DNA from: Macrostomum lignano
Lineage: Eukaryota
Assembly (NCBI GenBank): GCA_002269645.1
Contig: NIVC01001592.1
Coordinates: 124,001-188,000, forward strand
DNA: 64,000 nucleotides
Direction of reading: 5' to 3'
In this document: in pieces, positions 593-60,754 of the stretch
Numbering within the stretch: the stretch's first letter is position 1
Layout: each line of letters opens with the position of its first letter
The notes under the pieces: generated by a model
What the model saw: only the letters and a program-made list of their open reading frames with translations
Told to the model about the DNA's origin: nothing
Database searches by the model: none
Made by a program: the position numbers and the translations under genes

Positions 593-2352
593 ATACAGCC
601 GCAACCCGTCATGCACCGCAGGGCGCCTACGACCCCATCGGGCCAGTGGCTGCCGACATCGCCAGCCGGACCCGCCTGCTCTGCCTGGACGAATTCCAAG
701 TGACGGACATCGCCGACGCGATGATTCTGAAACGCCTGTTCACCGTGCTGTTCGCCTCCGGCCTGGTGCTGGTGGCCTCGTCAAACCGGGCCCCGGACGA
801 CCTGTACAAGAACGGGCTTCAGCGGGTGAACTTCCTGCCATTCATACCCATTCTGAAGCGGCACTGCGGCATTGTGGAACTCGGCTCCGGGGTGGATTAT
901 CGCAGACTGGCCCGGGACAAAGACGCTGCTGCTGGCTCTAGCGGCTCCATGCGTACCTACTTTCTATCTGGCGATGCCGATTCTAGCGTTGCCATGGAGA
1001 CGCTTTGGAAGCGATTGTGCTCGGCCGAGGCGGGCCCGGCCGGGCCGACCCGTCTGCGCGTGTTTGGCCGAGACGTCAGCTTTGACAAGTGCAAAGGCGG
1101 CCTGCTGTGGGCGAGCTTTGATCAGCTGTGCTGCCAGCCGCTGGCGGCCGCCGACTATGTGGCCGTGTGCCAGCGCTTCCACTGCCTGTTTCTGCACGGC
1201 GTTCCAGTGCTGTCGCTGCAGAACCGGAGCGCTATGCGGAGGTTTATTACCCTGATAGATACTATCTATGATAATAGGTGAGGATTAATTTCACTTTGTC
1301 GCTTTCGGGTCTTTATTGACGCTTTTATGGTGTGGCGCTTTGTAGATTTTGGCGCTTCTGTGGTGTGGCGCTTTGTAGATTTTGGCGCTTCTGTGGTGTG
1401 GCGCTTTGTAGATTTTGGCGCTTTTGTGGTGTGGCGCTTTTGTGTAGATTTTGGCGCTTTTGTGGTGTGTCGCTTTGTAGATTTTGGCGCTTTTGTGGTG
1501 TGGCGCTTTGTAGATTTTGGCGCTTCTGTGGTGTGGCGCTTTGTAGATTTTGGCGCTTTTGTGGTGTGGCGCTTTTGTGTAGATTTTGGCGCTTTTGTGG
1601 TGTGTCGCTTTGTAGATTTTGGCGCTTTTGTGGTGTGGCGCTTTGTAGATTTTGGCGTTTTTGTGGTGTGGCGCTTTGTAGATTTTGGCGTTTTTGTGGT
1701 GTGGCGCTTTGTAGATTTTGGCGTTTTTGTGGTGTGGCGCTTTGTAGATTTTGGCGTTTTTGTGGTGTGGCGCTTTTGTGTAGATTTTGGCGCTTTTGTG
1801 GTGTGTCGCTTTGTAGATTTTGGCGCTTTTGTGGTGTGGCGCTTTGTAGATTTTGGCGTTTTTGTGGTGTGGCGCTTTGTAGATTTTGGCGTTTTTGTGG
1901 TGTGGCGCTTTGTAGATTTTGGCGTTTTTGTGGTGTGGCGCTTTGTAGATTTTGGCGCTTTTGTGTAGATTTTGGCGCTTCTGTGGTGTGGCGCTTTGTT
2001 TACTGCTTACAGGTGATTATAGCTATGATAATTATCTATAGGCCAGGCATTCTTTAATCGCTCAGTCACCCCGCACCGCTGCCTCAGGTGCCGCCTAGTA
2101 ATAAGTGCGGCCGAGCCACCCGAGAGCCTGTTCCAGCCGGGCGACTCGTTGGACGAGGCCGAGCTGCACCGGATGCGCGTCCTTCGCGACGATCTGGGCG
2201 TGTCTCAGCACGGGCCCAACGCTGAATCGGCGGGGGCGACCATCTTCACGGGCGAGGAGGAGGTGTTCGCTCACGAGCGCACTGTGTCCCGCCTGACCGA
2301 GATGATGTCAGCTCAGTACTGGAGTGTGTCAGCTAGAGATGCTATCATCTGA
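593..2352 (+). CDS. AFG1L: AFG1-like mitochondrial ATPase (LACE1), last two exons 593-1277 and 2088-2352; 5' exons lie outside the window
   Basis: [12 protein letters not shown]...[22 protein letters not shown] (Walker B region of the AFG1 family), [31 protein letters not shown]-terminal [23 protein letters not shown] at 1278 and AG at 2086-2087 join in phase 2. Confidence 0.93.
1325..2000. repeat. Intronic minisatellite, 33-bp GT-rich unit
   Basis: GTGGTGTGGCGCTTTGTAGATTTTGGCGCTTTT tandem copies in the AFG1L intron. Confidence 0.95.
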
Positions 2353-2508
2353 GGCATACAAGATTGATACAATGTTAGCCTTTTTCAATTAGATTTTAGA
2401 TTTGCTACCTCTGAGCTCAGTGAAAAACTTTTTCTTCTGTCATCAAGTTGAATCGGAAAACTGGGTGCTTCAATGCTTCACTTCTTTACCCTCGTGTATA
2501 ATGGATTA

Positions 2509-2514
2509 AATAAA
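2509..2514 (+). terminator. Candidate poly(A) signal of AFG1L
   Basis: AATAAA ~155 nt after the stop codon at 2352. Confidence 0.5.
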
Positions 2515-2686
2515 GTACACATTGTCCTTGGCCTGACACACTTTGCAGGCGCTCAGTTTCTTATTTTACGTGTATCTAGAACTTTTTGTTCTTAGATTAC
2601 AATTACGTATTTTTGATTTGATTTTTCTTGCTTCTTGCTTATAACTTGCTGATAGGTAATCTTAAACCGACTTCCTTGATATTCAG

Positions 2687-2928
2687 TGCATGTCTCCCGC
2701 TCACTCTCTTACTCCAATGTACATTCTCCCCCACTACACCAACTTCATGAATGTACAGTGTCTCCCGCTCACTCTCTTACCCCAATGTACATTCTCTCTC
2801 CCCACAACCAACTTCATGAATGTACAGTGTCTCCCGCTCACTCTCTTACCCCAATGTACATTCTCTCTCCCCACAACCAACTTCATTAATCTAGTGTCTC
2901 CCGCTCACTCTCTTACCCCAATGTACAT
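2687..2928. repeat. Short tandem array, ~69-bp unit
   Basis: GTGTCTCCCGCTCACTCTCTTACCCCAATGTACATT repeated about 4 times. Confidence 0.9.
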
Positions 2929-2952
2929 TTGAAATTGCTTTTATGCCCGCAG

Positions 2953-5143
2953 TCGACGCCAAGGATTTTCCTCCAGCCCAGATTGGCTGCGGCAGCTGCG
3001 CCGGCTTATCTGATTGGCTGCCGGCGCGGCCTGGCCAGCAAGCCAAAAACGAAGGTCTACCATGCGCTGCCATTCACCCAGCTAGTCAAGAAGCAGCTGC
3101 TCAATCTGCGCTGTGTTATAGGCTGGCGTCGGGATCCATATTTGAAGGTGGCCAAAAGTTTGTACTGCGTCTGCGCCGAGTATCCCGATCACAGCGGCGA
3201 GTGGATTGCTAGACTGGGCCTGGACGACTCTTTTGCCACCTGGCATGGCATCACCTCGCTGCACCTTTGGCTTGTTATGCAAAGACTGCGGGCAATCTGC
3301 GAGCAGACCGTGTCCAAGGGTTCGGTTGATATCGACTATTCCACTACCTATGTGCTCTACGGCATGGGCCGCCTGTTTCACGCAGACATTCGCCAACGAC
3401 TGCACGACTTCCCCACCGTGTCTACTAAAATTCGAACTGCCGGGCAGCTGTTTAATCAGTTTCAGCATGTCAACTTTCTGTACAAACTGGCCTATACAGA
3501 TACTGATATGGCTCTGGCTGAGGTGCTGTGGAAACAGGTGGGTGCTCTGACTTTTAGCGAGCTCGGTTTCATTGAGCAGCTGTTGATTCTCATTGAGTAG
3601 CTGTTGAGTCTGATTGAGTAGCTGTTGATTCTCATTGAGTAGCTGTTGATTCTCATTGAGTAGCTGTTGATTCTCATTGAGTAGCTGTTGATTCTCATTG
3701 AGTAGCTGTTGAGTCTGATTGAGTAGCTGTTGATTCTCATTGAGTAGCTGTTGATTCTCATTGAGTAGCTGTTGATTCTCATTGAGTAGCTGTTGAGTCT
3801 CATTGAGTCTCATTGAGTAGCTGTTGATTCTCATTGAGTAGCTGTTGAGTCTCATTGAGTCTCATTGAGTAGCTGTTGATTCTCATTGAGTAGCTGTTGA
3901 GTCTCATTGAGTCTCATTGAGTAGCTGTTGATTCTCATTGAGTAGCTGTTGATTCTCATTGAGTAGCTGTTGATTCTCATTGAGTAGCTGTTGAGTCTGA
4001 TTGAGTAGCTGTTGATTCTCATTGAGTAGCTGTTGATTCTCATTGAGTAGCTGTTGATTCTCATTGAGTAGCTGTTGAGCCTGATTGAGTAGCTGTTGAT
4101 TCTCATTGAGTAGCTGTAGATTCTCATTGAGTAGCTGATGATTCTCATTGAGTAGCTGTAGATTCTCATTGAGTAGCTGTAGATTCTCATTGAGTAGCTG
4201 TTGATTCTCATTGAGTAGCTGTTGATTCTCATTGAGTAGCTGTTGATTCTCATTGAGTAGCTGTTGAGCCTGATTGAGTAGCTGTTGATTCTCATTGAGT
4301 AGCTGTAGATTCTCATTGAGTAGCTGATGATTCTCATTGAGTAGCTGTAGATTCTCATTGAGTAGCTGTTGATTCTCATTGAGTAGCTGTTGATTCTCAT
4401 TGAGTAGCTGATGATTCTCATTGAGTAGCTGTTGATTCTCATTGAGTAGCTGTTGATTCTCATTGAGTAGCTGTTGAGTCTCATTGAGTAGCTGTTGATT
4501 CTCATTGAGTAGCTGATGATTCTTATTGAGTAGCTGTTGATTCTCATTGAGTAGCTGATGATTCTTATTGAGTAGCTGTTGAGTCTCATTGAGTAGCTGT
4601 TGGTTCTCATTGAGTAGCTGTTGAGTCTGATTGAGTAGCTGTTGATTCTCATTGAGTAGCTGTTGATTCTCATTGAGTAGCTGTTGAATCTGATTGAGTA
4701 GCTGTTGGTTCTCATTGAGTAGCTGTTGAGTCTCATTCAGCAGCTGAGTCTCATTCAGCAGCTGAGTCTCATTCAGCAGCTGAGTCTCATTCAGCAGCTG
4801 AGTCTCATTCAGCAGCTGAGTCTCATTCAGCAGCTGAGTTCGCACCCAAGGCTTCCTTCCCTATTGCGTTCTCAACCCCCCCCCCCAGGTTTGCCACAGC
4901 TCGCCTAACGTGGACGCCGAAAGCCTGAACCTGCTAGTCCGCTACGTGAGAGCCAATTATCGCCATTTGTCTACCGTGCCCAACTCCGATCTGGTTGACA
5001 ACGGCATAGCAACCTTTCTGCCGTTGGTGCCGAAGCCGTCTCGAGACGAGACCAAGGCCTGGATGAGGCAGCGGCTGAAGCACGCTCTGGCGCCGCAGTC
5101 CACTGTGCAGCGAGCTGGGCAGCAACAGGGCGGTAGCTATTAA
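2953..5143 (+). CDS. UQCC1: Ubiquinol-cytochrome c reductase complex chaperone (CBP3 family); exons 2953-3537 and 4889-5143; no in-frame ATG at the 5' end
   Basis: LGLDDSFATWHGITSLHLWLVMQRLR, AYTDTDMALAEVLWK and LNLLVRYVR resemble CBP3 motifs. Arg-rich, acid-free N-terminus resembles a mitochondrial presequence. GT 3538 / AG 4887-4888, phase 0. Confidence 0.82.
3565..4838. repeat. Intronic minisatellite, 21-bp unit switching to an 18-bp variant
   Basis: TTGATTCTCATTGAGTAGCTG, then TCATTCAGCAGCTGAGTC from ~4725. Confidence 0.96.
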
Positions 5144-5384
5144 TTATTAGCTATATTAAAAGCTAGTTTAATAAGCATTGTATATGCATGACTGTTCACT
5201 CGCCATGTATATGGATAGTTATTATTAAATTCTAATTGTACTGTTGGTTTGTTTTCGTGTTTTATAATCGCTAATGTATGATGTGAGATCAAGTATTGCA
5301 ACTTTTTCAGTTCTTGAATATTTGCAGTCTAAGAAACATCCTTCAGGTGAAAAATCTGTTTAAAAGACCCCTCGTCCCCGATAA

Positions 5385-5640
5385 TGTACATTCAGCCTGA
5401 CCAACCCCTCGCCCCCGATAATGTACATTCAGCCTGACCAACCCCTCGTCCCCGATAATGTACATTCAGCCTAACCGACCCCTCGTCCCCGATAATGTAC
5501 ATTCAGCCTGACCAACCCCTCACCCCCAATAAAGTACATTTAGCATTGGTCAACCCCTCGTCTCCGATAATGTACATTCAGCCTGCATGGTCAACCCCTC
5601 ACCCGCGATAATGTACATTTAGCCTGACCAACCCCTCATC
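5385..5640. repeat. Tandem array, ~41-bp unit
   Basis: ACCCCTCGTCCCCGATAATGTACATTCAGCCTGACC repeats. Confidence 0.9.
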
Positions 5641-5959
5641 CTACGTTAAAATTCTAAGTTAATTGTCCTAGCCAAGACCTCAAAGTTCTCAAACAGACTA
5701 TAATCTGTCTATTTATCTAGACAGATGTTCACTGATGCAGTTTTTCATGTCTATTTTTGTTTGCTAGTATCTCGATTTGTTCAAATTGCATCTTACAAAT
5801 ATATGATGAAAAATGTGTTGAGTTTATTCAGTACCCGATAATTCAGCCGCTTATTCTTCTCTTATGAGCTGTCTGCATTGCTTTCTCTGGTGAAGACTTT
5901 CTGGTTAATCTACTGGCCTTACAGCTCTTCAAGCTGGGTCACCGGCAGCCTTCCAGGTT

Positions 5960-6955
5960 CTCAGTTGTTAGGCCAGCCTCCCAGATCCTCAGTTGCTATT
6001 CCAGCCTCCCATATCCTCAGTCGCTGGGCCAGCCTCAAAGATCCTCAGGGGCCAGCCTCCCGGATCCTCAGTTGCTATTCCAGCCTCCCATATCCTCAGT
6101 TGCTGGGCCAGCCTCAAAGATCCTCAGGGGCCAGCCTCCCATATCCTCAGTTGCTGGGCCAGCCTCACAGATCCTCAGGGGCCAGCCTCCCATATCCTCA
6201 GTTGCTGGGCCAGCCTCCCATATCCTCAGTTGCTGGGCCAGCCTCCCATATCCTCAGTTGCTGGGCCAGCCTCTCAGATCCTCAGTTGCTGGGCCAGCCT
6301 CCCATTATCCTCAGTTGCTGGGCCAGCCTCCCAGATCCTCAGCTGCTGGGCCAGCCTCCCATTATCCTCAGTTGCTGGGCCAGCCTCCCATTATCCTCAG
6401 TTGCTGGGCCAGCCTCTCAGATCCTCAGTTGCTGGGCCAGCCTCCCATTATCCTCAGTTGCTGGGCCAGCCTCCCATTATCCTCAGTTGCTGGGCCAGCC
6501 TCTCAGATCCTCAGTTGCTGGGCCAGCCTCTCAGATCCTCAGTTGCTGGGCCAGCCTCTCAGATCCTCAGTTGCTGGGCCAGCCTCTCAGATCCTCATTT
6601 GCTGGGCCAGCCTCTCAGATCCTCAGTTGCTGGGCCAGCCTCCCATTATCCTCAGTTGCTGGGCCAGCCTCCCATTATCCTCAGTTGCTGGGCCAGCCTC
6701 TCAGATCCTCAGTTGCTGGGCCAGCCTCTCAGATCCTCAGTTGCTGGGCCAGCCTCTCAGATCCTCAGTTGCTGGGCCAGCCTCTCAGATCCTCAGTTGC
6801 TGGGCCAGCCTCTCAGATCCTCAGTTGCTGGGCCAGCCTCTCAGATCCTCAGTTGCTGGGCCAGCCTCTCAGATCCTCAGTTGCTGGGCCAGCCTCTCAG
6901 ATCCTCGGTTGCTGGGCCAGCCTCTCAGATCCTCGGTTGCTGGGCCAGCCTCTCT
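5960..6955 (+). repeat. 28-bp minisatellite family X, copy 1
   Basis: GCTGGGCCAGCCTCTCAGATCCTCAGTT tandem copies. Confidence 0.95.
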
Positions 6956-7139
6956 AGATTCTCAGATTCTCAGTGAGGGATATCCGCATCTGTATGCATG
7001 TACATGTAGTGGCCATGCATTCATGCGAATATTAGCTTCAATTCTCTTCAAAGCGCCAGCCGTCGCTACTGGTAAACTACTGCCAGTAGTATCTCAGCGT
7101 GTCTTATTATTTACACGAAAAATCTGCCTGAGCAACGCT

Positions 7140-10100
7140 ATGGCCACCGAGGTCTGCTGCTCCAGCGGTTCCCCTAGCAACAACTCAAACAGCGGCTCCG
7201 GCTCCATTGTCACCGACAGCGGGGTGAGAAACTACATCACTGGCAGCGGCAAAAGCCGCGGTCTGGTGCTCATTCACGACATCTTCGGGCTGGACATTGG
7301 CCAGACTCGCCAGTTTGCCGATGACCTGGCAGCTAAGGCCGAGGCCACTGTGGTCATGCCGGACCTGTTCCACGGCGGAGAGGCCTGGAGCTTGGTCAGG
7401 TACGGAGCTCTTGGGAGCCTTGGGAATCACCTGTTCAACTTTAGGAATCAACTGTTCAACTTTAGGAATCACCTGTTCAACTTTAGGAATCACCTGTTCA
7501 ACCTTGGGAGTCACCTGTTCAACCTTGGGAATCACCTGTTCAACTTTAGGAATCAACTGTTCAACTTTAGGAATCACCTGTTCAATTTTAGGAATCACCT
7601 GTTCAACCTTGGGAATCACCTGTTCAACCTTGGGAATCACCTGTTCAACCTTGGGAATCACCTGTTCAACCTTGGGAATCACCTGTTCAACCTTGGGAAT
7701 CACCTGTTCAACCTTGGGAATCACCTGTTCAACCTTGGGAATCACCTGTTCAACCTTGGGAATCACCTGTTCAACCTTGGGAATCACCTGTTCAACCTTG
7801 GGAATCACCTGTTCAACTTTAGGAATCAACTGTTCATCCTTGGGAATCACCTGTTCAACCTTGGGAATCACCTGTTCAACCTTGGGAATCACCTGTTCAA
7901 CCTTGGGAATCACCTGTTCAACCTTGGGAATCACCTGTTCAACCTTGGGAATCACCTGTTCAACCTTGGGAATCACCTGTTCAACCTTGGGAATCACCTG
8001 TTCAACCTTGGAATCACCTGTTCAACCTTGGGAATCACCTGTTCAACCTTGGGAATCACCTGTTCAACTTTAGGAATCAACTGTTCATCCTTAGGAATCA
8101 CCTGTTCAACTTTAGGAATCAACTGTTCATCCTTGGGAATCACCTGTTCAACCTTGGGAATCACCTGTTCAACCTTGGGAATCACCTGTTCAACCTTGGG
8201 AATCACCTGTTCAACCTTGGGAATCACCTGTTCAACCTTGGGAATCACCTGTTCAACCTTGGGAATCACCTGTTCAACCTTGGGAATCACCTGTTCAACT
8301 TTAGGAATCAACTGTTCATCCTTGGGAATCACCTGTTCAACTTTAGGAATCAACTGTTCATCCTTGGGAATCACCTGTTCAACCTTGGGAATCACCTGTT
8401 CAACCTTGGGAATCACCTGTTCAACCTTGGGAATCACCTGTTCAACCTTGGGAATCACCTGTTCAACCTTGGGAATCACCTGTTCAACCTTGGGAATCAC
8501 CTGTTCAACCTTGGGAATCACCTGTTCATCCTTGGGAATCACCTGTTTATCTCACCTCACAACCTCACAACAATGATACCTGGAATCCCCATCCGGCCGC
8601 AGATTCCCGCCCCCTGACAAGACCGAATTCGGCAACTGGCTGTCAACAACGGCCAACGCTGACAAGGCCGCGAAGGCAATCCTGGACCAGACGGTGCCGC
8701 TGTTGAAGCACCGAATCGACCCGAGCGCCAAGCTGGCTCTGCTGGGCTTCTGCTGGGGCGCCAAGCCGGCCATGCTGCTGGCAGCCGCTGCCGGTTCGCC
8801 TTTCACCTGCGCCGCCTCCGCGCATCCGGCCTTTCTAACGGCTGACCTTGTCAGGGCTGTGCGAGTGAGCGGCTGGGGAGAGGGGAACAGAGAGGGGAAG
8901 GGAAAGGGAGAAGGAAGGAGAGAGGGAGAGAAGAGAGGAGAGAAGGGGAGAAGGGAGGAGAGACGGGGGAGAAGGGAGGAGAGACGGGGGAGAAGGGAGG
9001 AGAGAGGGGAGAAGAGAGTAGAGGGGAGAAGGGAGGAGAGAGGGGAGAAGAGAGTAAAGAGGGAAGAAGGGAGGAGAGAGGGGAGAAGAGAGTAAAGAGG
9101 GAAGAAGGGAGGAGAGAGGGGAGAAGAGAGTAAAGAGGGAAGAAGGGAGGAGAGAGGGGAGAAGGGAGGAGAGACGGGGGAGAAGGGAGGAGAGACGGGG
9201 AGAAGAGAGTAGAGGGGAGAAGGGAGGAGAGAGGGGAGAAGAGAGTAAAGAGGGAAGAAGGGAGGAGAGAGGGGAGAAGGGAGGAGAGACGGGGGAGAAG
9301 GGAGGAGAGACGGGGAGAAGGGAGGAGAGATGGGAAGAAGGGAGAAGATAGGGGAAGAAGGGAGGAGAGAGTGGGAGAAGAGAGTAAAGAGGGGAGAAGG
9401 GAGGAGAGAGGGGAGAAGGGAGGAGAGACGGGGGAGAAGGGAGGAGAGAGGGGAGAAGGGAGGAGAGAGGGGAGAAGGGAGGAGAGAGGGGAGAAGGGAG
9501 GAGAGAGGGGAAGAAGGGAGGAGAGAGGGGAAGAAGGGAGGAGAGAGGGGAAGAAGGGAGGAGAGAGGGGAAGAAGGGAGGAGAGATGGGGAGAAGGGAG
9601 GAGAGAGGGGAAGAAGGGAGGAGAGAGGGGAAGAAGGGAGGAGAGATGGGAAGAAGGGAGGAGAGATGGGAAGAAGGGAGGAGAGAGGGGAAGAAGGGAG
9701 GAGAGAGGGGAAGAAGGGAGGAGAGATGGGGAGAAGGGAGGAGAGAGGGGAAGAAGGGAGGAGAGAGGGGAGAAGGGAGGAGAGAGGGGAAGAAGGGAGG
9801 AGAGATGGGGAGAAGGGAGGAGAGAGGGGAAGAAGGGAGGAGAGAGGGGAAGAAGGGAGGAGAGAGGGGAAGAAGGGAGGAGAGAGGGGAGATGGAGGAA
9901 AGGTGCTGACATTTACGAAGTAAAAATGACCATGTACTGAACTGGGGCGCAGGCGCCGCGAATAGGCCGCGAGGCCCCTATCGTAAAATGACCATGTAGT
10001 AATGAAATTCTGCACAGCTGCATGCAACTTTAGTTTATAAAAACCGCCCTGCCCAGATGCCCATCGCCCTGCTGCCGGCCAGTGACGATCCGGACATGCA

Positions 10101-10278
10101 GAAGTTGCTGGAGGAGCTGCGCGACCAGCCGTTCTACAGTCGCTGCGTTCACCGACGCTACGACGGCGTCTCGCACGGATTCTGTGCCGCCCGCGGCGAC
10201 CGCAACGACGCCAAGCAGATGGAGAAAATCCTGGACGCTCGCGACACGCTGGCCAAGTTTTTTATTGACAACGCCTGA
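7140..10278 (+). CDS. CMBL: Dienelactone hydrolase / carboxymethylenebutenolidase-like; exons 7140-7399, 8603-8864, 10057-10278
   Basis: LVLIHDIFG, VVMPDLF, nucleophile elbow GFCWG and catalytic His in YDGVSHGF. Junction phases (2, 0) are consistent. Confidence 0.88.
7420..8548. repeat. Intronic minisatellite, 21-bp unit TTGGGAATCACCTGTTCAACC
   Basis: Fills CMBL intron 1. Confidence 0.96.
8880..9900. repeat. Polypurine (GA-rich) intronic array
   Basis: GGAGAAGGGAGGAGAGAGG-type units, with almost no pyrimidines on the + strand. Confidence 0.95.
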
Positions 10279-10404: not shown

Positions 10405-10925
10405 TGCTTTTTTATACAGAGTCACAGAGGGTGGGTGACGCAGACAGAGTGACTCAGAGAGGGTGGGTGACGCAGACAGAGTGACTCAGAGAGGGAGTGA
10501 CGCAGACAGAGTGACACAGAGAGGGAGTGACGCAGATAGAGTGACACAGACAGTGACACAGAGGGAGTGACGCAGACAGAGTGACTCAGAGAGGGTGGGT
10601 GACGCAGACAGAGTGACTCAGAGAGGGAGTGACGCAGACAGAGTGACTCAGAGAGGGAGTGACGCAGACAGAGTGACTCAGAGAGGGAGTGACGCAGACA
10701 GAGTGACACAGAGGGAGTGACACAGACAGAGTAACACAGACAGAGTGACAGAGAAGGAGTGACACAGACAGAGTGACACAGACAGAGTGATTCAGAGAGA
10801 GAGAGTGACACAGAGAGGGAGTGATGCAGACAGAGTGACACAGAAAGGGAGTGACGCAGACAGAGTGACTCAGAGAGGGAGTGACGCAGACAGAGTGACA
10901 CAGAAAGGGAGTGACGCTGAGGAGA
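10405..10925. repeat. ~30-bp minisatellite between the convergent 3' ends of CMBL and ENaC
   Basis: GTGACGCAGACAGAGTGACTCAGAGAGGGA repeats. Confidence 0.92.
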
Positions 10926-14100: not shown

Positions 14101-17100
14101 TCATTCTTGTGTGGTCATTCTGTGTGACCATTCTTGTTGTGTGATCATTCTGTGTGATCATTCTGTGTGATCATTCTGTGTGATCATTCTTGTGTGATCA
14201 TTCTGTGTGATCATTCTGTGTGATCATTCTTGTGTGATCATTCTCTGTGATCATTCTGTGTGATCATTCTTGTGTGATCATTCTCTGTGATCATTCTGTG
14301 TGATCATTCTCTCTGTGATCATTTTGTGTGATTATTCTTGTGTGACCATTCTTGTGTGACCATTCTTGCGTGATCATTCTCTGTGATCATTCTGTGTGAT
14401 ACTCGTAATTCTTGTGTGATTATTCTTGTGTGACCATTCTTGTGTGACCATTCTTGCGTGATCATTCTCTGTGATCATTCTGTGTGATACTCGTAATTCT
14501 TGTGTGATCATTCTGTGTGTGTGATCATTATTGTGTGATCATTCTGTGTGATTATTCTTGTGTGATCATTCTGTGTGACCATTCTTGTGTGATCATTCTG
14601 TGTGACCATTCTTGTGTGATCATTCTGTGTGACCATTCTTGTGTGATCATTCTGTGTGACATTCTTGTGTGATCATTCTGTGTGATCATTCTGTGTGACC
14701 ATTCTTGTGTGATCATTCTGTGTGACATTCTTGTGTGATCATTCTGTATGATCATTCTTGTGGGATCAATATATTGTAAGCAGTGTGACCAATATAGTGT
14801 CAGCAGTGTGACCAATATAGTGTCAGCAGTGTGACTAATATAGTGTCAGCAGTGTGACCAATATAGTGTCAGCAGTGTGACCAATATAGTGTCAGCAGTG
14901 TGACCAATATAGTGTCAGCAGTGTGACCAATATAGTGTCAGCAGTGTGACTAATATAGTGTCAGCAGTGTGACCAATATAGTGTCAGTCAGCAGATAACC
15001 GGATCCAGCTCACCTGTAGACCAGGTGGTTGATGGTGCCCGGCTGCAGCTTGTTCACCCGGCAGTCCTGCAGCATAGGCTGGTAGCCCTGCACCTGCACG
15101 TCCACCGCCAGCCCCTGCTCGGTGGTCTGCAGGCTCTCCAGCATGCAGTTCTCGCAGCGCCCGGCCTCCCGATAGTCCAAGAAGGCCAACACGTGCAGGC
15201 TCTGCACCTCGGCAGCCAGAGCGCCGTGGAAGGTGATCCTGTAGCACTTGAAGTAGCGGCTGTCCCGCACGGTGGACACCTGAGCCTCCGAGCAGCTGAA
15301 TATCCGGCCCTTGGTGTTGCGGAAGTGGCAGAGCTCCTTCACCAGCAGCTGCCCGCTGTCGAAGCCCAGGTAGTTGCTGAGATTCGCTGGCAGGTTGGCG
15401 AAGTAGCCCGGCATCGAGGCCACGTGACTGCTGAGCTGGTCGGTGAGGTTGAACTGCTGGTGCCGGCTGTCCAGCAGCTGCGACCAGGCGTGCGGCGACA
15501 GGCGGAAGTGCGCGTGCAGCTGGCCGAGCTCGAGCTGGCGCAGCTGCCTCAGCGGGATCGGCTGCAGATTGCACAGGGTCACGTCCGGGAAGGCCAGGCC
15601 GGGGGCGGTCTGAATGGCCAAAGACGGAGGGTTCGAGTTCGGGCCCCTCTCAGTAAGCGCCTCCGTAAGCGCCTCCGTAAGCGCCATCTTTCCTAGTAAG
15701 CGCCCTCTCCCAGGAGCGCCCTCCCAGTAAGCGTGCGCCTCTCTTAGTAAGCGCCTCTCTCGGTGAGCGCCCTTTTTCAGTAAGCGCCGCTTTCAGTAAG
15801 CGCACCTCTCAGTAAGCGCCTCTCTTAGTAAGCGTCGCTCTCAGTAAGCGCCCCTTTCAATAAGCGCACCCCTCAGTAAGCGCACCTCTCAGTAAGCGCA
15901 CCTCTCAGTAAGCGCACCTCTCAGTAAGCGCACCTCTCAGTAAGCGCACCTCTCAGTAAGCGCACCTCTCAGTAAGCGCACCTCTCAGTAAGCGCACCTC
16001 TCAGTAAGCGCACCTCTCAGTAAGCGCACCTCTCAGTAAGCGCACCTCTCAGTGAGCTCCGCCATTTGCCATTGTTTTTACTTCACAGAGTCGCACTACA
16101 AGTATCCTTCATCTGCTACCCGAAGTCGGCAGCCAGCAGAAGTGAATGTTCCTCACCAGGCTGATGGTCTGCATGAAGCTCTCGTACATGAGGTACCGCT
16201 GCATCAGCACAGTGAAGAAGGCGGCCGACACCAGCAGCATGAGGGTGAAGGTGACAATCCAGACCCTGCGCCAGACGTTGTCCCGCGCCCTCGGGATCCG
16301 CGCCAGGCCGCGCAGAGATGAAGTGAGCATGAATCGCAGAGCCTCGTCCCGCAGAGTCTCGTTCAGAGACAGCGGCGGTTGCACGTCTTCGGAGTTCCGC
16401 CGCTGCTCCTGCCGAGACGCCTCCTGCTCCAGTTGCTGCTCTTGTTGCTTCTTTTGGTGCTGCTGCTGCACACTGTGACTCAACGTCTGAATGATGGAGA
16501 TGTCCTTCACCTGTTCCGTAATCGTGCTAACAATTCGCGTCACCTGTTGCTGCTTTTGCTGTTGTTGCTGTTGCGGATTGCAGCCTGTATTTTGCGGGTA
16601 CCTGAGCAAGAGATGTGTAATAGAACGGTGACGGTAGTATTGGTTGAGTTCGCAGCATGTCGATGTGTAGCTAAGGAGGGCTGTCGTAGCCCAGACTCGA
16701 TTCCCAGTGCAGTCGCATTGATTTGGGGCTAAATTGGCTGCTCGGCTTGGCTCTGCTCGTGCAATTAACACCTTTGAGAGCCAACCCCCCAAGGCGCAGT
16801 GAAGTGTACATGCCTAACGATAAATAAAGTTAGGGCCGCTGTACACTCCTGTGTGAGTGTGTGCCTGCGCGTATGACTGCGTACGTATCCGCGCGCTTGT
16901 GTGCCTGCTCAGGGGAGTCGGCGGAATGGGCAGCAATACCTCTCGCCGGTTGTGTGACAATGTCGCTTAAAGTGCGCCAGGGTGCACACAGCCCATTGCC
17001 TCTAATAAGAAAAAATAGACAGGCAGCGATGAGGCAGGCAAGCAGTCGTGCTCAATAAAGCTGAACCCTGAGCACGAACACTCTCACGGATGCTTTGCAT

Positions 17101-19590: not shown

Positions 19591-21710
19591 TTAAGTAGGC
19601 AGGTCGCTCTTGTCCACGATGAACTTGATGAACATGGCGTCGTCCTTGACGTAGCCGCGACTGCCGTTCTCGAAGTCGGCCAGCGGCATGAACAGCGGGC
19701 AGCCCGAGGCGATGTTCATGTCCGTGCTGGGCCGCTTGAACGAAGACGACGAAGTGTCCGGCTTGAAGGCGTCGATCACGTGCTCGTCGAAGTTCTGGTC
19801 CAGCAGCATCATGGAGACCTTCTTGGCGAAGGGCCACGGCAGCAGGGCGTCGAAGGCACCGCGCATGATCACGAAGAAGAGGCTGATGTGCGTGTTCTTG
19901 CCGGCGCCGTCACCGTTCAGGTAGAGTCGTCCGCACATCTTGTAGCTGGGGCGGATGGGGTAGATTGACGGCGGATTGAGGAGCGGATTGGCGGATTGAG
20001 GGGCGGATTGGCGGATTGAGGGGCGGATTGGCGGATTGAGGGGCGGATTGGCGGATTGAGGGGCGGATTGGCGGATTGAGGAGCGGATTGGCGGATTGAG
20101 GGGCGGATTGGCGGATTGAGGGGCGGATTGGTGGATTGAGGGGCGGATTGGCGGATTGAGGGGTGGATTGGCGGATTGAGGGGCGGATTGGCGGATTGAG
20201 GGGCGGATTGGCGGATTGAAGGGCGGATTGAGGGCGAATTGGCGGATTGAGGAGTGGATTGGCGGATTGAGGGGCGAATTGGCGGATTGAGGAGTGGATT
20301 GGCGGATTGAGGAGTGGATTGGCGGATTGAGGAATGGATTGGCTGATTGAGAAGTGGATTGGCGGATTGAGGGGCGGATTGGCGAAAACTCGAACCCGTG
20401 GAAGCGTCAGTCAAAACTCACCCAGCCTTGCCCGTGTAGAACGGAGGCGAGTAGATCGAGCACACCTTGCCCTCCCGCGCTTCCTCCTTGCGTCGCCGCA
20501 CATCCGTGATCTTCCACACAAGAACCCCGTCGTAGCCAGCGTGCTCAAGAACCTCAACGCGCCGCTCAAGGTCGAGAATCTTCATCTCTTTGTAGGCCAG
20601 CAGCTTCACCAGCTCCTGGTGCTTCCGCTCGATGTCCAGCTTCTTCTCCAAGTCCTTCTGCATCCGCAGCTCGTACTGCCTGATCTTGTCGTAGCAGTTG
20701 TCAAACTGCTCCTTGATCACCTGAAGCAGCTCCTTCACCTTGTCGCCCTGCACGATGCTGCCTTGGAGGTCCTTCAGAATCTTCGCCAAGTCTGTGGGCA
20801 GCGCCATGGACTTCATCCTGGATTCCAAGGCAGCCGCCTTCTCCTTCAGCCGGCTCAGCTCTTCAAAGTCGGACCCAGTCAGCTCGGAGGCCGGCACTGA
20901 AGTTCCCGCCGCTGCACCCCTGGAGACGGGCACGAGGCTCTGCTCTGGTGGATCAGCCTGCTGCTGCTGCTGCCGCTTTGACAAGGCCAACAGCCTGTCA
21001 ATGTGGGTGGCTTGGTGCTGTATCCGGTGCTTCTCCCAGCCCTCGGACATGTCCGAACACCCGAAAGGACACTGTTCGGTGTGCCACCCGACCGGACATT
21101 CATTTAACCAGTGGGAGCTCTTGGCCTCTTCGTTGTCCTTGACGCGAGCCAAGCAGAACTCGCACTCCACTGTACTGCCAATGCAAGTTGAGCTCTTGTG
21201 CTCATCCAATGACTCAAAGGCTACTCGCTCCTTGCACACTTCGCAGGGCACAAGTCTTCTGCGGCATTTCTTCTCTTTGTGCTTAGCCAGACGCTGCATA
21301 GCAACCAATTTTCCGCACAGCTCGCAAGGCTCGGGCCTGAACTCGCACTCTTGAAGGTGATCGTCCAGCTCCCTTACCTGCATCACCTTGTCGCAAGGAG
21401 AGTTCGGGCACTGCACCTTCAGCGACTTGTTGATCTCCCTCTTGATGGCCATGTCAGGGTAGGTTCGGTCTGGCGAAATTTCTGCCCTGTCGCTGTCGCT
21501 TGAGTCGCATTCCAGGCAGAGAGACGGCTCGCCCTTCTGCTTGGCCTCGTTGAACTTGAGCTGCACGCAGTTCCTGCAGTAGCGGTGACCGCAGTCTCCT
21601 TGCATCGGCTCTCTCAGCAGCAGGTGACAGTGGGCGCACTTGTATCTGGCTTCCAGCTTGTCTATGCCGCCGATCTTGTAGCCCATCTGCAGCTGACTGC
21701 TTTCGGCCAT
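19591..21710 (-). CDS. TRAF2/3-like adaptor E3 ligase, copy 1; exons 20422-21710 and 19591-19945
   Basis: RING (CAHC...CGHRYCRNC), TRAF zinc fingers (CPNSPC...HLQEC, CELC...HKEKKC), coiled coil, TRAF-C/MATH (YDGVLVWKI, SPPFYTG..GYKMCGRLYLNGDG, WPF, GCPLF). Confidence 0.95.
19965..20385. repeat. 20-bp minisatellite GGCGGATTGAGGGGCGGATT in the TRAF copy 1 intron (shorter array at 32760-32950 in copy 2)
   Basis: Same unit in both paralogous introns (476 vs 251 bp). Confidence 0.94.
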
Positions 21711-22794
21711 TGCTTTCTTTAAAAATCCAGTTTTGAAACGAATATCAGGGGATTTGCTTTGCCCACTAAATTTCTTAGGGGTTATTTTATTTAGAGCCAA
21801 ACCAAGGCAATCCCACGGAAATTCCATTCATACATGGATCTGAACTGTAAAGCAAGTGTACACGATCTATTTTTAGAAATTTTGTAGAGATTTCCCTCCT
21901 AGACGACTTGAGGCAAACTTTATTGTGCAGCGGCCAGGGTGAATCAGCATTGCTGAGAAATTCACCGAGAAAAACAAAACTTCAAAGATTGACGCTAACC
22001 TCGGAATGAAAATTACCGTGAGAATTAGACTTTTGGCATGATACGGGCTCGTACAAAGATTGTTGAAATGGAGAGTTCATGCTGCTTTCTCATTTCGTGA
22101 CGTGAAGGATGAGTTCGCTGTGTGGCGACCCCGGCCGCGTTCGTTGTTTTCGTTTTTAACGTACACTTCAAAGACTTTTGTTTGACCCATGTTTAGAAAC
22201 GAATGCGTATGACAAGACAGACTAACTTTCTGATACTGAAAGTATTCATAATCTTTGAAAAGCCTTCTTACACCGGCTGCCAAGTAAAGCATCAGCAATC
22301 AGCATTTGTTAGAAGAATGACAATATGTCAAAGAGAGACGTTAAGCAGAAAACAAATTCTGTGACAATTCGGCTTTTGTTTTGATGCAACAATTAGTAGA
22401 AACTTGGAGCTTGTGCTTAGTTGCTTTTTGTTTTTTCGTGACCATCACTTCGCCGCCAAAAAATCTCCATGACACGTCCGTCGATCGACCGTTTCTTTCC
22501 TTTTTTAGACTAACATGTGCGAAGTAAAAAAGGACTTTCCACGGAAAATCCACGGTATTGCCGAGTGAACATGGAACCTACCTATAGTTCATTTTAATTT
22601 TGTAGGTTAATAATAAGAAGACGCAAGGAATGAACACGTTATTCGGTGCATAAGATTTCACAATTACAATGTGTAACAACTAGTAATAAATATAAATATA
22701 TTAACAGTATTCAAATAGCTATTCAGAACGGACAAATCCATAAGCAATCAAACAGACAAACTAAACACACGCTTAAAATAGTCACAAAACTAAA

Positions 22795-26500: not shown

Positions 26501-29444
26501 TTTTGACGTCCATCGCCGAGGACGAGGAGGCCGGAGGAGGCACCAGCTGCGGCGGCTGCTGGTGACGCAGCGAGGACGAAGACTCGGCGGCCATCAGGCG
26601 CATCTTCAGCGGGATGGCGCCGACGCCGCTGCCGCCGCCAACGACGCCAGAGCCGCTGCCGCAGGGCGCCACCGAGCTGGCAGAGGTCGCCATGGAATCT
26701 TCCTCGTCGTCAAAGGCGTAGGGATCTCGCTGGTGCTGCGGCTGTCGCTGCGGCAGCTGAAGCTGTTGCTGCTGGTGAGAGTCGCCGGATGAGGCAGACT
26801 GGGAAGCTGGGCCGCCGGACACGGAGCCGGGGCCAACCCGCTGCTGGAAGAATTTCTTGCCTCCGCCAGCAGCTGAGCCGGTCGCGGCAGTGACAGCGGG
26901 CGAGCTGGAGCTCACGCGTGAGTCCTCTTGGCTGCCTGAAGCTCGCTGCATCAGCGAAGCAGTGGCACCGGTAGCAGCAGCTGACGATGTTGATGACGAA
27001 GACTCCACCTCTTGAATGTCGACAGAGGGCGTCTGCGACTGCGGCAGCTGCTGCTGACTTGGCAGAGACCTCGACAATGCGCTACTGTGTGGGCCAGTGG
27101 ATCGACCGGCACTCGACGACGACACAGCGTCGGTGTCGGTTCCGGCGACCAGCATCGACTGCGGCGGCAGCGACGGCGGAGGCAGCAACGCTTGAGGCGG
27201 CGCCGATGCCTGAGGCAGCGAAGGCGGCACAGCCAGCGGCAGAGGCGCAGGGCTCCTCGACCGGTCCTCCTCGTCTTCGTTGACACCGCTGCCAACGCAG
27301 CCGCGGTCGCTGGAGGCCGGCAGCTCCGCGTCGGGCGTCGGTGTCGGTGGCGAAGCGTCGCCGTCGTCGAGTTGTTCAGCATCAGCGGCCTCGCGGTTCC
27401 CGCCTGCGTCTAGCAACTGCCGCTCCGACGGAAACGACGGCGGCGGCGACGGCAGAGATGAAGCGGCCGCGGCGGATTGCGCGATCCACGGCGGAGCCGA
27501 AGAAGCAGACGGGCCGCCGCTGGCCGTTAGCGTCGACGTGTCCGCCTGCTGATGCTGCCGACGATGGTCCATCGAGGAGGTGGACTCGGCGGCGGCCGAT
27601 GGCGTCAGAGACGGCGGCGCCGCCTGCTGGCTGGACGACGGCAGCAAGTCGGGGCAGCGGCGGCGGCGGAGGCGGCATCTGAAGAATCGGCAGCGGAGGC
27701 GGCAGCAGCGGCGGCAGCGGCGCGAGCTCCGCTAGTGGACGAATCGGCGGAGCCACGCACGCAGTCGGGACTCGAGCCGGTGCCGCTGGACTCTCCGCCA
27801 GCCAGGGTTCCTTGGGATTTGAGCAGAGGGAGATAAAATTTTAGGAGCAGGTTAAAAGGACAGGAGGATATGAGAAATAAGTAGATGGCGAATAAATGGG
27901 GGCGGATAGGCCACGAGGGGCGGATCAAGGCTACAATGGGGGCGGATAAATGCTACAATGGGGGCGGATCAATGCTACAATGGAGGCGGATCAATGCTAC
28001 AATGGGGGCGGATCAATGCTACAATGGAGGCGGATCAATTCTACAATGGGGGGGGGCGGATCAATGCTACAATGGGGGGGGGCGGATCAATGACAAAAAT
28101 GGGGGCGGATCAATGCTACAATGGGGGCGGATCAATGCTACAATGGGGGCGGATCAGTGCTACAATAGGGCGGATAAGCAATGTCTCACCGGCAAGCAGC
28201 AGGTCACGGATAGCGTCGCTGCTGGCCAGGCCCAGCGGTGTCTGCCCGGCATCGTTGGCGCAGTCGGTGCGGGCACCGTGGCGCAGCAGGCAGCGACAGA
28301 CCCGGTCGTGGCCCTGCCTGGCCGCGTCGTGTAGCGCCGTGTCGCCGTCCAATCCGCGCAGATGCGGGCTGGCGCCGGCTTTAAGCAGCGCCCGGCTGAG
28401 CTCGGCGTGGCCCCGGATGGCGCACTCGTGTAGCGCAGTCCATCCGGCATTGTCCTGCAGAGGGGAGGGAGGGAGTGGCATTTTTAGCTGCGGCTTGAAT
28501 GCCATCGCTTAATGCAGTTCGGTTTATAGGCTTGCAAAGTTTAGGTTTATATATAGGCTTGCAAATTTTAGGTTTATAAGTTTATGAAGTTTAAGATTAT
28601 ATGTTCGCAAAGTTTAGGTTTATAGGTTTGCGAAGTTTAGGTTTATAGGCTTGCAAAGTTTAGGTTAGGCATATTCTTGGTGCTGATGAACCTTTTGGAA
28701 AGCCTTATGGAACTTGAGATCACAAGAGATTCACGTAGAGATAGCAATTGTATACAACTGCATCCGCCCGTTATTCTCATTGCATAGTCCTAAAAAGCCA
28801 TCTGAGCAGCTTCGACGCACCTGCGCATTTACGTCCGCCCCAGCTGCCAGCAGCTGCTTAGCGTAGCGCAAGTCGTTCCGTTTAGCCGCCTTGTGAAGCG
28901 GCGTCTCGCCTTTGCCGTTGCGCTTGTTGGGCCGCCGGATTTCCGACTGGCCGGCGCTGACGCCGCTGACGCCGCTGCGACTTGTGCTGGCCAGGTGTTC
29001 AACTGACTGTGCCGCGGCTGCAGACGGTTGCTGCTGTTGCTGATGATGCTGGATGCTGGCCGAGTCCGAGCTGCAGCTGATGGCGGAGGAAGCTGACGCA
29101 GCCGCCGGGTGATTCGCCGCCGGGGCGGCGGCGGCGGCGGCGGCGCCGGAAGCGGCAGACGAGGACACGACATTCTTGTCGGCCGAGGCGTCGGAGGCTG
29201 GCGAGCCCGAGGCCGATGAAGCCGCCGAGGTTGACGACGGCGACGACGATGAAGAAGCCGATGACGACGAGGAGCCGCCCGAGGAGCTAGACGACGAAGA
29301 ATCGCCATGGGCCGTCGCCGCCGCGGCAGCCTCGCCTGAGAAATCCGAGTCCATGCGGCGCTTCTTGGGTGGGTTGCCGCCGCCGCCGCCGCCGCCGCCT
29401 GACGAGCTGGCGCCGGAGCGGCTGTCCGATTCTTTGCCGGACAT
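23501..29444 (-). CDS. ANKRD11/12: ANKRD11/ANKRD12-like ankyrin chromatin co-regulator; exons 28821-29444, 28190-28454, 26049-27810 (frameshift near 27650), 24445-25299, 23501-24040
   Basis: Ankyrin repeats NKRNGKGETPLH...AGWTALHE...GLDGDTALHDA. Conserved C-terminus LFLEQEEAR..LRL..ERERLVLAAEQE, FVTWIDEI..KF, RQHHEADALNAVQKLDWELKLKE, VPLIDV. The start codon may be further upstream. Confidence 0.88.
24175..24440. repeat. 20-bp minisatellite AGAGGAAATCCCACACCGCC in the last ANKRD intron
   Basis: Starts at the donor site and decays toward the acceptor. Confidence 0.9.
27905..28172. repeat. ~22-bp minisatellite GGGCGGATCAATGCTACAATGG
   Basis: ANKRD intron 2. Confidence 0.9.
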
Positions 29445-29489
29445 GCTCAGGGGGTCTGCGGGATGGGCGTCCGAGTACCGGGTCTGAGC

Positions 29490-30300
29490 ACTGTGCCTAT
29501 GAGCACCGCGTCTGATCACTGCATCTGGTCACTGTGCCTGTTCATTGTCTGATCTGGTCACTGCATCTGGTCACTGTGCCTGTTCACTGTCTGATCTGAT
29601 CACTGTATCTGGTCACTGTGCCTGTTCACTGTCTGATCTGATCACTGTATCTGGTCACTGTGCCTGTTCATTGTCTGATCTGATCACTGCATCTGGTCAC
29701 TGTGCCTGTTCACTGTCTGATCTGATCACTGCATCTGGTCACTGTGCCTGTTCACTGTCTGATCTGGTCACTGTGCCTGTTCACTGTCTGATCTGATCAC
29801 TGTATCTGGTCACTGTGCCTGTTCACTGTCTGATCTGATCACTATATCTGGTCACTGTGCCTGTTCACTGTCTGATCTGATCTGATAACTGCATCTGGTC
29901 ACTGTGCCTGTTCACTGTCTGATCTGATCTGATAACTGCATCTGGTCACTGTGCCTGTTCATTGTCTGATCTGATCACTATATCTGGTCACTGCCTGTTC
30001 ACTGTCTGATCTGATCACTGCATCTGGTCACTGTGCCTGTTCACTGTCTGATCTGATCACTGCATCTGGTCACTGTGCCTGTTCATTGTCTGATCTGATC
30101 ACTGCATCTGGTCACTGTGCCTGTTCACTGTCTGATCTGATCACTGCATCTGGTCACTGTGCCTGTTCACTGTCTGATCTGATCACTGCATCTGGTTACT
30201 GTGCCTGTTCACTGTCTGATCTGATCACTGTATCTGGTCACTGTGCCTGTTCACTGTTTATCACTGCACCTGGTTACTAAGCCCGCTCACTGTCTGATCA
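29490..30300. repeat. 42-bp minisatellite (CTGATCACTGCATCTGGTCACTGTGCCTGTTCACTGTCTGAT)
   Basis: Immediately 5' of the first recognised ANKRD exon. Confidence 0.95.
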
Positions 30301-32385: not shown

Positions 32386-34292
32386 TTAAGTAGGCAGGTC
32401 GCTTTTGTCCACGATAAACTTGATGAACATGGCGTCGTCCTTGACGTAGCCGCGACTGCCGTTCTCGAAGTCGGCCAGCGGCATGAACAGCGGGCAGCCC
32501 GATGCGATGTTCATGTCCGTGCTGGGCCGCTTGAACGAAGACGACGAAGTGTCCGGCTTGAAGGCGTCGATCACGTGCTCGTCGAAGTTCTGGTCCAGCA
32601 GCATCATGGAGACCTTCTTGGCGAAGGGCCACGGCAGCAGGGCGTCGAAGGCACCGCGCATGATCACGAAGAAGAGGCTGATGTGCGTGTTCTTGCCGGC
32701 GCCGTCGCCATTCAGGTAGAGTCGTCCGCACATCTTGTAGCTGGGGCGGATGGGGTAGATTGACGGCGGATTGAGGGGCGGATTGGCGGATTGAGGGGCG
32801 GATTGGCGGATTGAGGGGCGGATTAGTGGATTGAGGGGCGGATTGGCGGATTGAGGGGTGGATTGGCGCTGGCGGATTGAGTGGCGGATTGGCGGATTGA
32901 AGGGCGAATTGGCGGATTGAGGAGTGGATTGGCGGATTGAGGGGCGGATTGGAGAGAATTCGAACCCGTGGAAGCGTCAGTCAAAACTCACCCAGCCTTG
33001 CCCGTGTAGAACGGAGGCGAGTAGATCGAGCACACTTTGCCCTCCCGCGCCTCCTCTTTGCGCCGCCGCACATCCGTGATCTTCCACACAAGAACCCCGT
33101 CGTAGCCAGCGTGCTCAAGAACCTCAACGCGCCTCTCGAGGTCGAGAATCTTCATCTCTTTGTAGGCCAGCAGCTTCACCAGCTCCTGGTGCTTCCGCTC
33201 GATGTCCAGCTTCTTCTCCAAGTCCTTCTGCATCCGCAGCTCGTACTGCCTGATCTTGTCGTAGCAGTTGTCGAACTGCTCCTTGATCACCTGAAGCAGC
33301 TCCTTCACCTTGTCGCCCTGCACGATGCTGCCTTGGAGGTCCTTCAGCATCTTCGCCAAGTCTGTGGGCAGCGCCATGGACTTCATCCTGGACTCCAAGG
33401 AAGCCGCCTTCTCCTTCAGCCGGCTCAGCTCTTCAAAGTCGGACCCAGTCAACTCGGAGGCCGGCACTGAAGTTCCCGCCGCTGCCGCCGCCGCTGCACC
33501 CCTGGAGACGGGCACGAGGCTCTGCTCTGGTGGATCAGCCTGCTGCTGCTGCTGCCGCTTTGACAAGGCCAACAGCCTGTCAATGTGGGTGGCTTGGTGC
33601 TGTATCCGGTGCTTCTCCCAACCCTCGGACATCTCCGGACACCCGAAAGGACACCGTGTGGTGTGCCACCCGACCGGACATTCCTCCAACCAGTGAGAGC
33701 TCTTGGCCTCTTCGTTGTCCTTGACGCGAGCCAAGCAGAACTCGCACTCCACTGTACTGCCAATGCAAGTTGAGCTCTTGTGCTCATCCAATGACTCAAA
33801 GGCTACTCGCTCCTTGCACACATCGCAGGGCACAAGTCTTCTGCGGCATTTCTGCTCTTTGTGCTCAGCCAGACTCTGCATAGCAACCAATTCTCCGCAC
33901 AGCTCGCAAGGCTCGGGCCTGAACTTGCACTCTTGAAGGTGATCGTCCAGCTCCCTTACCTGCATCATCTTGTCGCAAGGAGAGTTCGGGCACTGCACCT
34001 TCAGCGACTTGTTGATCTCCCTCTTGATGGCCATGTCAGGGTAGGTTCGGTCTGGCGAAATTTCTGCCCTGTCGCTGTCGCTTGAGTCGCATTCCAGGCA
34101 GAGAGACGGCTCGCCCTTCTGCTTGGCCTCGTTGAACTTGAGCTGCACGCAGTTCCTGCAGTAGCGGTGACCGCAGTCTCCTTGCATCGGCTCTCTCAGC
34201 AGCAGGTGACAGTGGGCGCACTTGTATCTGGGTTCCAGCTTGTCTATGCCGCCGATCTTGTAGCCCATCTGCAGCTGACTGCTTTCGGCCAT
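32386..34292 (-). CDS. TRAF2/3-like adaptor E3 ligase, copy 2; exons 32992-34292 and 32386-32740
   Basis: Same domains and intron position as copy 1. 15 amino-acid substitutions plus a 4-Ala insertion by manual comparison. Confidence 0.95.
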
Positions 34293-60706: not shown

Positions 60707-60754
60707 GGGAAAAACAATAGTTAGGATAGTGCGATTGCAGCGCTTGACTGGCAA

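Follow-up and report, generated by a model that had tools for sequence, protein, structure and literature searches.

We analyzed a 64,000-nucleotide (nt) stretch of Macrostomum lignano nuclear DNA (assembly GCA_002269645.1, Mlig_3_7; contig NIVC01001592.1, starting at contig position 124001; hereafter the window, whose positions are used unless another locus is named), in which AFG1L is followed on the forward strand by UQCC1. Our results suggest, with a probability that we put at roughly 0.7, that UQCC1, a mitochondrial assembly-factor gene without a start codon of its own, takes its AUG from the spliced leader joined at 2952|2953, downstream of AFG1L in one precursor.

The UQCC1 first exon and the spliced leader

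Exon 1 of UQCC1 (Mlig001086g2) spans 2953-3537 on the forward strand and comprises 195 codons, the first ATG being codon 109. The proposed trans-splice acceptor, TTTTATGCCCGCAG|, occupies 2939-2952 of the same strand; positions 2941-2955 read TTATGCCCGCAG|TCG, with the AG of the acceptor at 2951-2952. As read by eye and unscored, this CAG is the first AG after a pyrimidine tract and a CTTAC branch-like site. From 2953 the UQCC1 frame opens in phase 0 as STPRIFLQPRLAAAAAPAYLIGCRRGLASK... and is stop-free to the donor CAG|GTGGGT (3537|3538; 9.8 bits), beyond which an intron consisting almost entirely of 21- and 18-nt tandem repeats (3538-4888) ends in the acceptor CCCCCCCAG|G. The frame continues in exon 2 (4889-5143), which opens CCCCCAG|GTT and closes with the stop TAA at 5141-5143. 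Addition of the leader ATG to 2953-3537 gives 196 open codons in frame with UQCC1 that run on into exon 2; phase 0 at a single acceptor would be met in one case out of three by chance alone. Upstream of 2953 the same frame holds 21 sense codons, none of them ATG, back to a stop at 2887-2889, and the ATG at 2943 lies in frame +2 relative to UQCC1. The first in-frame genomic ATG is at 3277-3279, within the CBP3 domain. The Met encoded there is residue 110 of the protein formed by the leader Met plus the exons, 22 residues into the PF03981 (Ubiq_cyt_C_chap) domain, which spans residues 88-236 of this protein (E = 9.8e-17; 61.8 bits against a cut-off of 21.5; profile positions 2-138 of 140).

The same anatomy was found in two paralog copies (L001 and L002), whose equivalent junction sites are on contigs NIVC01000282.1 and NIVC01000356.1; the locus on NIVC01001592.1 is called L003, and the window starts at L003 base 7043. 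In all three genomic copies the frame lacks an ATG ahead of codon 109 and meets a stop 7-21 codons 5' of the junction. Exon 1 differs between the paralogs by 1.2-2% and has no indels; the unique part of the spacer upstream of it differs by ~7% and shows 15 gap columns, and of the six paralog differences in the 60 nt 5' of 2953, five fall in the final 25 nt. Because they are conserved without indels and include domain residues, the 108 codons that precede the ATG at 3277 must be translated.

A search with the spliced translation of 2953-3537 plus 4889-5143 returned two M. lignano protein clusters, and the spliced protein of the window is identical from 2959 (residue PRIF) onward to M. lignano PAA66075.1 (BOX15_Mlig001086g2, 'partial'). 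The nearest relatives outside Macrostomum in a full HMMER scan were the UQCC1 proteins of Cichlidogyrus, Protopolystoma and Schistosoma mekongi, and homology with flatworm UQCC1 usually begins 40-70 residues ahead of the internal Met. With a start at 2953, the N-terminus contains no D or E for 61 residues, the first acidic residue being at position 62, and its first 30 residues hold 4-6 K/R and no D/E, giving a net positive charge; it also includes an R-G-L|A-S stretch, which we take to resemble an R-3 cleavage motif. Judged by this composition, the basic, acid-free N-terminus most likely acts as a mitochondrial presequence. At its other end, the protein terminates in ...GGSY-TAA in the window (5132-5143) and in ...GGS-TAG in both paralogs (L001 11956-11967), a short insertion at the stop. 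A Logan contig with a distant UQCC1 homologue (L004) was uninformative.

The spliced leader of M. lignano, CGGTCTCTTACTGCGAAGACTCAATTTATTGCATG, is 35 nt long and ends ...TTGCATG; about 30% of the genes are trans-spliced and ~15% are in operons, and the motif enriched at trans-acceptors is [T/C]TNCAG (PMC8629364). For the genus Macrostomum, the final ATG of the leader has been called the 'translation start codon' (PMC10468722). No leader match of at least 12 nt and no leader tail of at least 8 nt was found in the window or the fetched loci, where 6-7-mers are chance matches. The Mlig_3_7 assembly was polished with RNA sequencing (RNA-seq) data, and the UQCC1 junction reads CAG|TCG in the window (2950-2952) and CTG|TCG in L001 and L002 (9986-9988), the T at -2 being the base of the leader; UniProt models from the older ML2 assembly, which represent the same two paralog types, read Y-P-Q|S-A-P-R, i.e., CAG at the junction. 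A similar pattern was observed at the AFG1L junction, which reads TTTCAG|GCTTC in L003 (6049-6052), TTTATG|GCTTC in L002 (4634-4636) and TTCATG|GCTTC in a further AFG1L copy, L007 (2996-2999). The variant bases at both junctions (6-7 in number) all equal the leader tail ...GCATG at the matching offset, and the four cis acceptors checked across copies all keep their AG. The simplest interpretation is that leader-bearing reads from RNA-seq replaced bases just 5' of true trans-splice junctions. If the T at -2 in L001 and L002 is such a mis-polished leader base, it reflects reads with ...TG|TCGGCG and points to leader addition at the equivalent of 2953. No such footprint was seen at 2964 or 2977, the two neighboring candidate junctions discussed below, in the three genomic copies.

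In the mechanism that we propose, a single precursor would span AFG1L and UQCC1, and the 3' end of AFG1L would be formed by cleavage and polyadenylation beyond the AATAAA at 2509. The 35-nt leader would then be joined to the CAG acceptor at 2953, as we think probable, or at 2977, to which we give a small chance. The terminal leader AUG, placed directly before TCG ACG CCA..., would initiate a product M-STPRIFLQPRLAAAAAPAYLIGCRRGLASK... that continues into the CBP3/UQCC1 domain, and without trans-splicing UQCC1 would have no usable start codon. A sequence-only reading of this DNA had put forward the same arrangement, citing the phase-0 frame at |TCG 2953, the first in-frame ATG inside the CBP3 domain, a TAG placed in frame by the donor GATAG|GTAATC, an AATAAA ~440 nt before the acceptor, an AUG-ending flatworm leader and an acid-free, Arg-rich presequence. 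All of these coordinates hold, and the leader property applies to M. lignano itself. As to the contrary evidence that it had named, 2353-2952 yielded no ATG-initiated exon with a usable donor, and the ATG at 2943 is lacking in the paralogs and the ML2 models.

Weighing the source of the AUG and the choice of acceptor

The conventional explanation of an exon without ATG is a cis-spliced 5' exon with its own ATG, here unrecognized in the spacer or further upstream, and the donor TAG|GTAATC (GT at 2656; 5.8 bits), the sole spacer donor above 3 bits, is conserved in the paralogs. However, this donor makes TAG, in frame, the last exon codon (2653-2655), and no ATG-initiated exon with a real donor was found in 2353-2952, every ATG-to-GT pair there scoring at most 2.5 bits compared with 9.6-9.8 bits for the two real donors. 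The spacer is also mostly a repeat array of variable copy number, and the N-terminal length matches that of orthologues without an additional exon: 62-65 residues precede the LxxxCAEYP block in flatworm orthologues and 70 (start at 2953) or 62 (start at 2977) in M. lignano, so that no long missing exon is expected. We therefore consider a hidden cis exon highly improbable, and the same low standing is given to translation from the genomic ATG at 3277, or to a decaying paralog that makes no functional protein. That ATG is the first in frame, and redundant copies exist in M. lignano, a hidden polyploid, but a start at 3277 would remove the probable presequence, 22 residues of the Pfam domain and the conserved CAEYPD block, and the 108 codons 5' of it are open and free of indels in all three copies. 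Since the copies contain no in-frame ATG before codon 109, no cis exon was found in 2353-2952 and the N-terminal length fits, the leader must supply the start codon, initiation at a non-AUG codon being the less plausible option. A separate candidate, an indel that would bring the ATG at 2943 into frame, was rejected as a general solution because neither paralog has this ATG, nor do the ML2 models.

If the leader supplies the AUG, it could also be joined 24 nt further 3', at the alternative acceptor CTCCAG| (2971-2976, forward strand; CTCCAG|CCC, 2976|2977), from which the exon is again in phase 0 and the protein would begin M-PRLAAAAAP... (M-PRLAAAAAPAYL...); the principle would be the same and only the junction would differ. 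The 2977 site is a perfect match to [T/C]TNCAG, does not vary among the three genomic copies, even where 2950-2952 read CTG, and would leave the 62-residue N-terminal region found in Protopolystoma and Schistosoma UQCC1. Nevertheless, we think its use unlikely: by eye, two other AGs separate it from the pyrimidine tract in the window copy, all annotated UQCC1 coding sequences (CDSs) begin 5' of it, and no copy carries a leader footprint there, as opposed to the footprint at 2953. Less probable still is that the main trans-splice site is AAG|G, with its AG at 2962-2963 of the forward strand and the exon starting at 2964 (2963|2964), where the junction would read |GATTTTCC and the leader AUG would be out of frame, opening an overlapping 83-codon open reading frame (ORF); UQCC1 would then be made inefficiently, by initiation at a non-AUG codon or through leaky scanning, unless this 5' end is non-productive. 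In its favor, the CDS of both paralogs starts exactly 1 nt past the equivalent AG, and at AFG1L in L003 and L007 a CDS start at +1 likewise goes with a real junction. However, AAG is a weak splice acceptor, no leader footprint is present at 2964, and the out-of-frame product has an acidic first residue and no homology that we could find, while the 108 upstream UQCC1 codons are free of indels and hold domain residues. The annotated 5' ends behind the +1 argument are themselves not reliable to the nucleotide, since three of the seven examined follow no AG, whereas the CDSs of AFG1L in L003 and L007, which begin 1 nt after the junction, show that the annotation pipeline can be exact. An 'AG filter' in this pipeline was ruled out as the source of the shifted CDS starts, as the L007 AFG1L CDS starts at the junction despite the CATG upstream of it.

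Several points weigh against leader addition at 2953. Its support comes from sequence and annotation, with a single indirect trace of RNA in the footprint bases. Taken alone, the CTG in L001 and L002 argues against this junction, and the UQCC1 footprint is one base, which may instead be a genuine sequence variant that abolishes the acceptor in these two copies. The hexamer CCGCAG fits [T/C]TNCAG only in part, in contrast to the perfect match of CTCCAG| at 2977. The GenBank CDS starts at 2959 in the window, 6 nt 3' of 2953 and after no AG, and at the equivalent of 2965 in the paralogs (L001/L002 10001; 12 nt 3'), where it sits 1 nt after the AAG|G site that puts the leader AUG out of frame; the start at 2959 keeps both the 2964 and the 2977 alternatives alive. 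The unit prefix common to AFG1L and UQCC1 comes from the naming scheme and not from reads. Finally, the hydrophobic moment of the N-terminus, from a crude helical calculation, is weak, at 0.32-0.35 compared with 0.61-0.68 in orthologues.

The AFG1L-UQCC1 unit and its surroundings

AFG1L (Mlig001086g1) contributes its penultimate coding exon at 622-1277 (acceptor CACCGCAG|GG; donor TAG|GTGAGG at 1278) and its last coding exon at 2088-2352, both on the forward strand, with the stop TGA at 2350-2352 and the annotated CDS end at L003 9394, i.e., window 2352. The translation of 622-1277 plus 2088-2352 matches PAA66074.1 (Mlig001086g1) with 100% identity and 100% coverage of that translation; the product carries PF03969, and its closest named relatives are AFG1-like ATPase and ATPase N2B, at ~50% identity. 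The 5' junction of AFG1L, TTTCAG|G at L003 6053, lies ~990 nt upstream of window position 1. A leader AUG joined there starts a 42-codon ORF in another frame, which overlaps the gene's own ATG. As this ATG lies 13 codons 3' of the annotated CDS start, the GenBank CDS, flagged as partial, is 13 codons too long. Trans-splicing also applies to the first cistron, and the two cistrons use the leader AUG differently.

Between the two genes, 2353-2952 comprises the AFG1L 3' untranslated region and the intercistronic spacer, the outron of UQCC1. The AFG1L poly(A) signal AATAAA (2509-2514, forward strand) is kept in all three genomic copies and lies 439 nt 5' of 2953. Most of the spacer is a 69-nt tandem repeat at 2691-2929 (239 nt), present in 3.5 copies here, ~7 in L001 (~9450-9965) and ~28 in L002 (~8030-9965), and in step with the repeat number the annotated UQCC1 CDS begins 606, 869 or 2287 nt past the AFG1L stop in the three copies. 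Given this variation among paralogs, the 69-nt array behaves as neutral filler; the repeat-adjusted spacer is ~180 nt.

Repeats lengthen the operon spacers of M. lignano, whose modal length is near 100 nt after repeat subtraction, and operons have been called at a repeat-adjusted intergenic distance of <1 kb (Ustyantsev and Berezikov 2021, PMC8629364); the 606 nt between AFG1L and UQCC1, including 239 nt of repeat, fall within this limit, and the 439 nt from AATAAA to the acceptor are well below it. Transcriptional units were defined from RNA-seq, cut at experimentally mapped trans-splice and poly(A) sites and given a common name prefix (Wudarski 2017, PMC5730564). AFG1L and UQCC1 carry the locus tags Mlig001086g1/g2 on this contig and Mlig029659g1/g2 in the second copy; in the third, the unit is split into Mlig001086g4 and Mlig004120g1. 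Read from this naming scheme, the two genes are cut from one RNA-seq transcriptional unit. The gene tables of the three loci give AFG1L and then UQCC1 on the same strand, with no opposite-strand gene between them, and GenBank already annotates UQCC1 as a 5'-partial CDS and as gene 2 of its unit, which fits a trans-spliced downstream gene. The dicistron is therefore already present in the existing annotation. No mention of Mlig001086, Mlig004120, Mlig029659 or UQCC1 was found in the text-searchable supplementary tables of M. lignano papers, and the searchable protein and contig collections contained no M. lignano transcript contigs, the UQCC1 cluster having only NCBI and UniRef members.

Of the operon that the sequence-only reading had drawn, the AFG1L-UQCC1 pair stands, with its common prefix Mlig001086, and the possible third member CMBL does not. 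The CMBL-like dienelactone hydrolase (7035-10278) belongs to a different unit (Mlig020230g1), has its own ATG at 7140, and its 5' end does not follow an AG. Its annotated 282-aa 'partial' CDS, from 7035 onward, includes 35 codons of translated 5' untranslated region before the real ATG, and a paralog copy is annotated as 247 aa beginning at ATG. At orthologous loci, UQCC1 of Schistosoma mekongi and Cichlidogyrus casuarinus has a genome-encoded ATG, and AFG1L was not found within 10 kb of UQCC1 in either species (loci L005, L006). To go by these loci, the ATG-less, AFG1L-linked arrangement is not shared by these two parasitic flatworms.

Tandem-repeat arrays occupy 1-523, 1316-1965, 3569-4839, 5367-5641, 5946-6965, 7418-8547, 8902-9892 and 10416-10917, so that, over the first 11 kb, no intron and neither of the intergenic spacers is free of them; each array has a different unit (10-69 nt). 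Further along the window, gene fragments lie on the reverse strand at 15010-15687, 20418-21827, 28731-29519, 32988-34292 and 59942-61195; they comprise an ASC/ENaC-type channel, two TRAF-like RING/zf-TRAF genes, an ankyrin-repeat ORF and a nuclear hormone receptor (zf-C4 plus ligand-binding domain). No Rfam family was found in the window.

Relation to known leader systems and implications

Use of the flatworm leader AUG as initiator Met goes back to Cheng, Cohen, Ndegwa and Davis (2006, J Biol Chem 281:733), as related in PMC9851317 and PMC12582326; more than 40 Schistosoma mansoni complementary DNAs (cDNAs) are reported to need it. UQCC1 shares with these messengers an AUG-ending leader in frame with a recipient exon that has no start of its own. 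It differs in that the organism is a free-living macrostomid and initiation is predicted, and UQCC1 is not described in this way in those accounts of the work. The published M. lignano operons (PMC5730564, PMC8629364) offer the same same-strand pair, poly(A) signal followed by trans-acceptor, short repeat-inflated spacer and common prefix; neither paper takes up the question of reading frame or of a need for the leader AUG, and here the first gene, AFG1L, is trans-spliced too. The start codon is likewise supplied by leader addition in the slORFs detected by slORFfinder (PMC9851317), which were derived from ribosome footprints in nematodes, Oikopleura and trypanosomes and are mostly non-AUG, whereas here the codon is a canonical AUG and the ORF that of a conserved housekeeping gene. 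Like the SL2-type operons of C. elegans, the unit would be a polycistron resolved by 3' end formation coupled to trans-splicing ~100 nt away after subtraction of repeats, but M. lignano has one leader for all positions. To our knowledge, the leaders of nematodes neither have AUG as their last bases nor provide the initiator codon.

Both leader-AUG initiation in flatworms (2006) and M. lignano operons are thus in the literature. UQCC1, in a dicistron that the annotation already contains, is a well-supported further example of this known mechanism and holds little biological surprise. What is most original here is a side result, the leader footprint that the reference assembly carries. We would give slightly better than even odds to a broader proposal: that all M. 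lignano UQCC1 copies have lost their genomic start and depend obligately on trans-splicing, that a sizeable share of the '5'-partial' CDSs are complete leader-AUG ORFs, and that the assembly contains leader-derived, mis-polished bases that erase the AG of genuine trans-splice acceptors. If this is true, such bases could be mined as a map of trans-splice junctions. The GenBank and UniProt entries of UQCC1, which are truncated or over-extended, would be completed by adding the leader Met, a correction that probably suits many other 'partial' M. lignano CDSs, and transgenes of such genes would have to supply an ATG or retain the acceptor. For the animal itself, UQCC1 would be a concrete case, from a conserved housekeeping gene, in which a free-living model flatworm ties the production of a mitochondrial protein firmly to trans-splicing.

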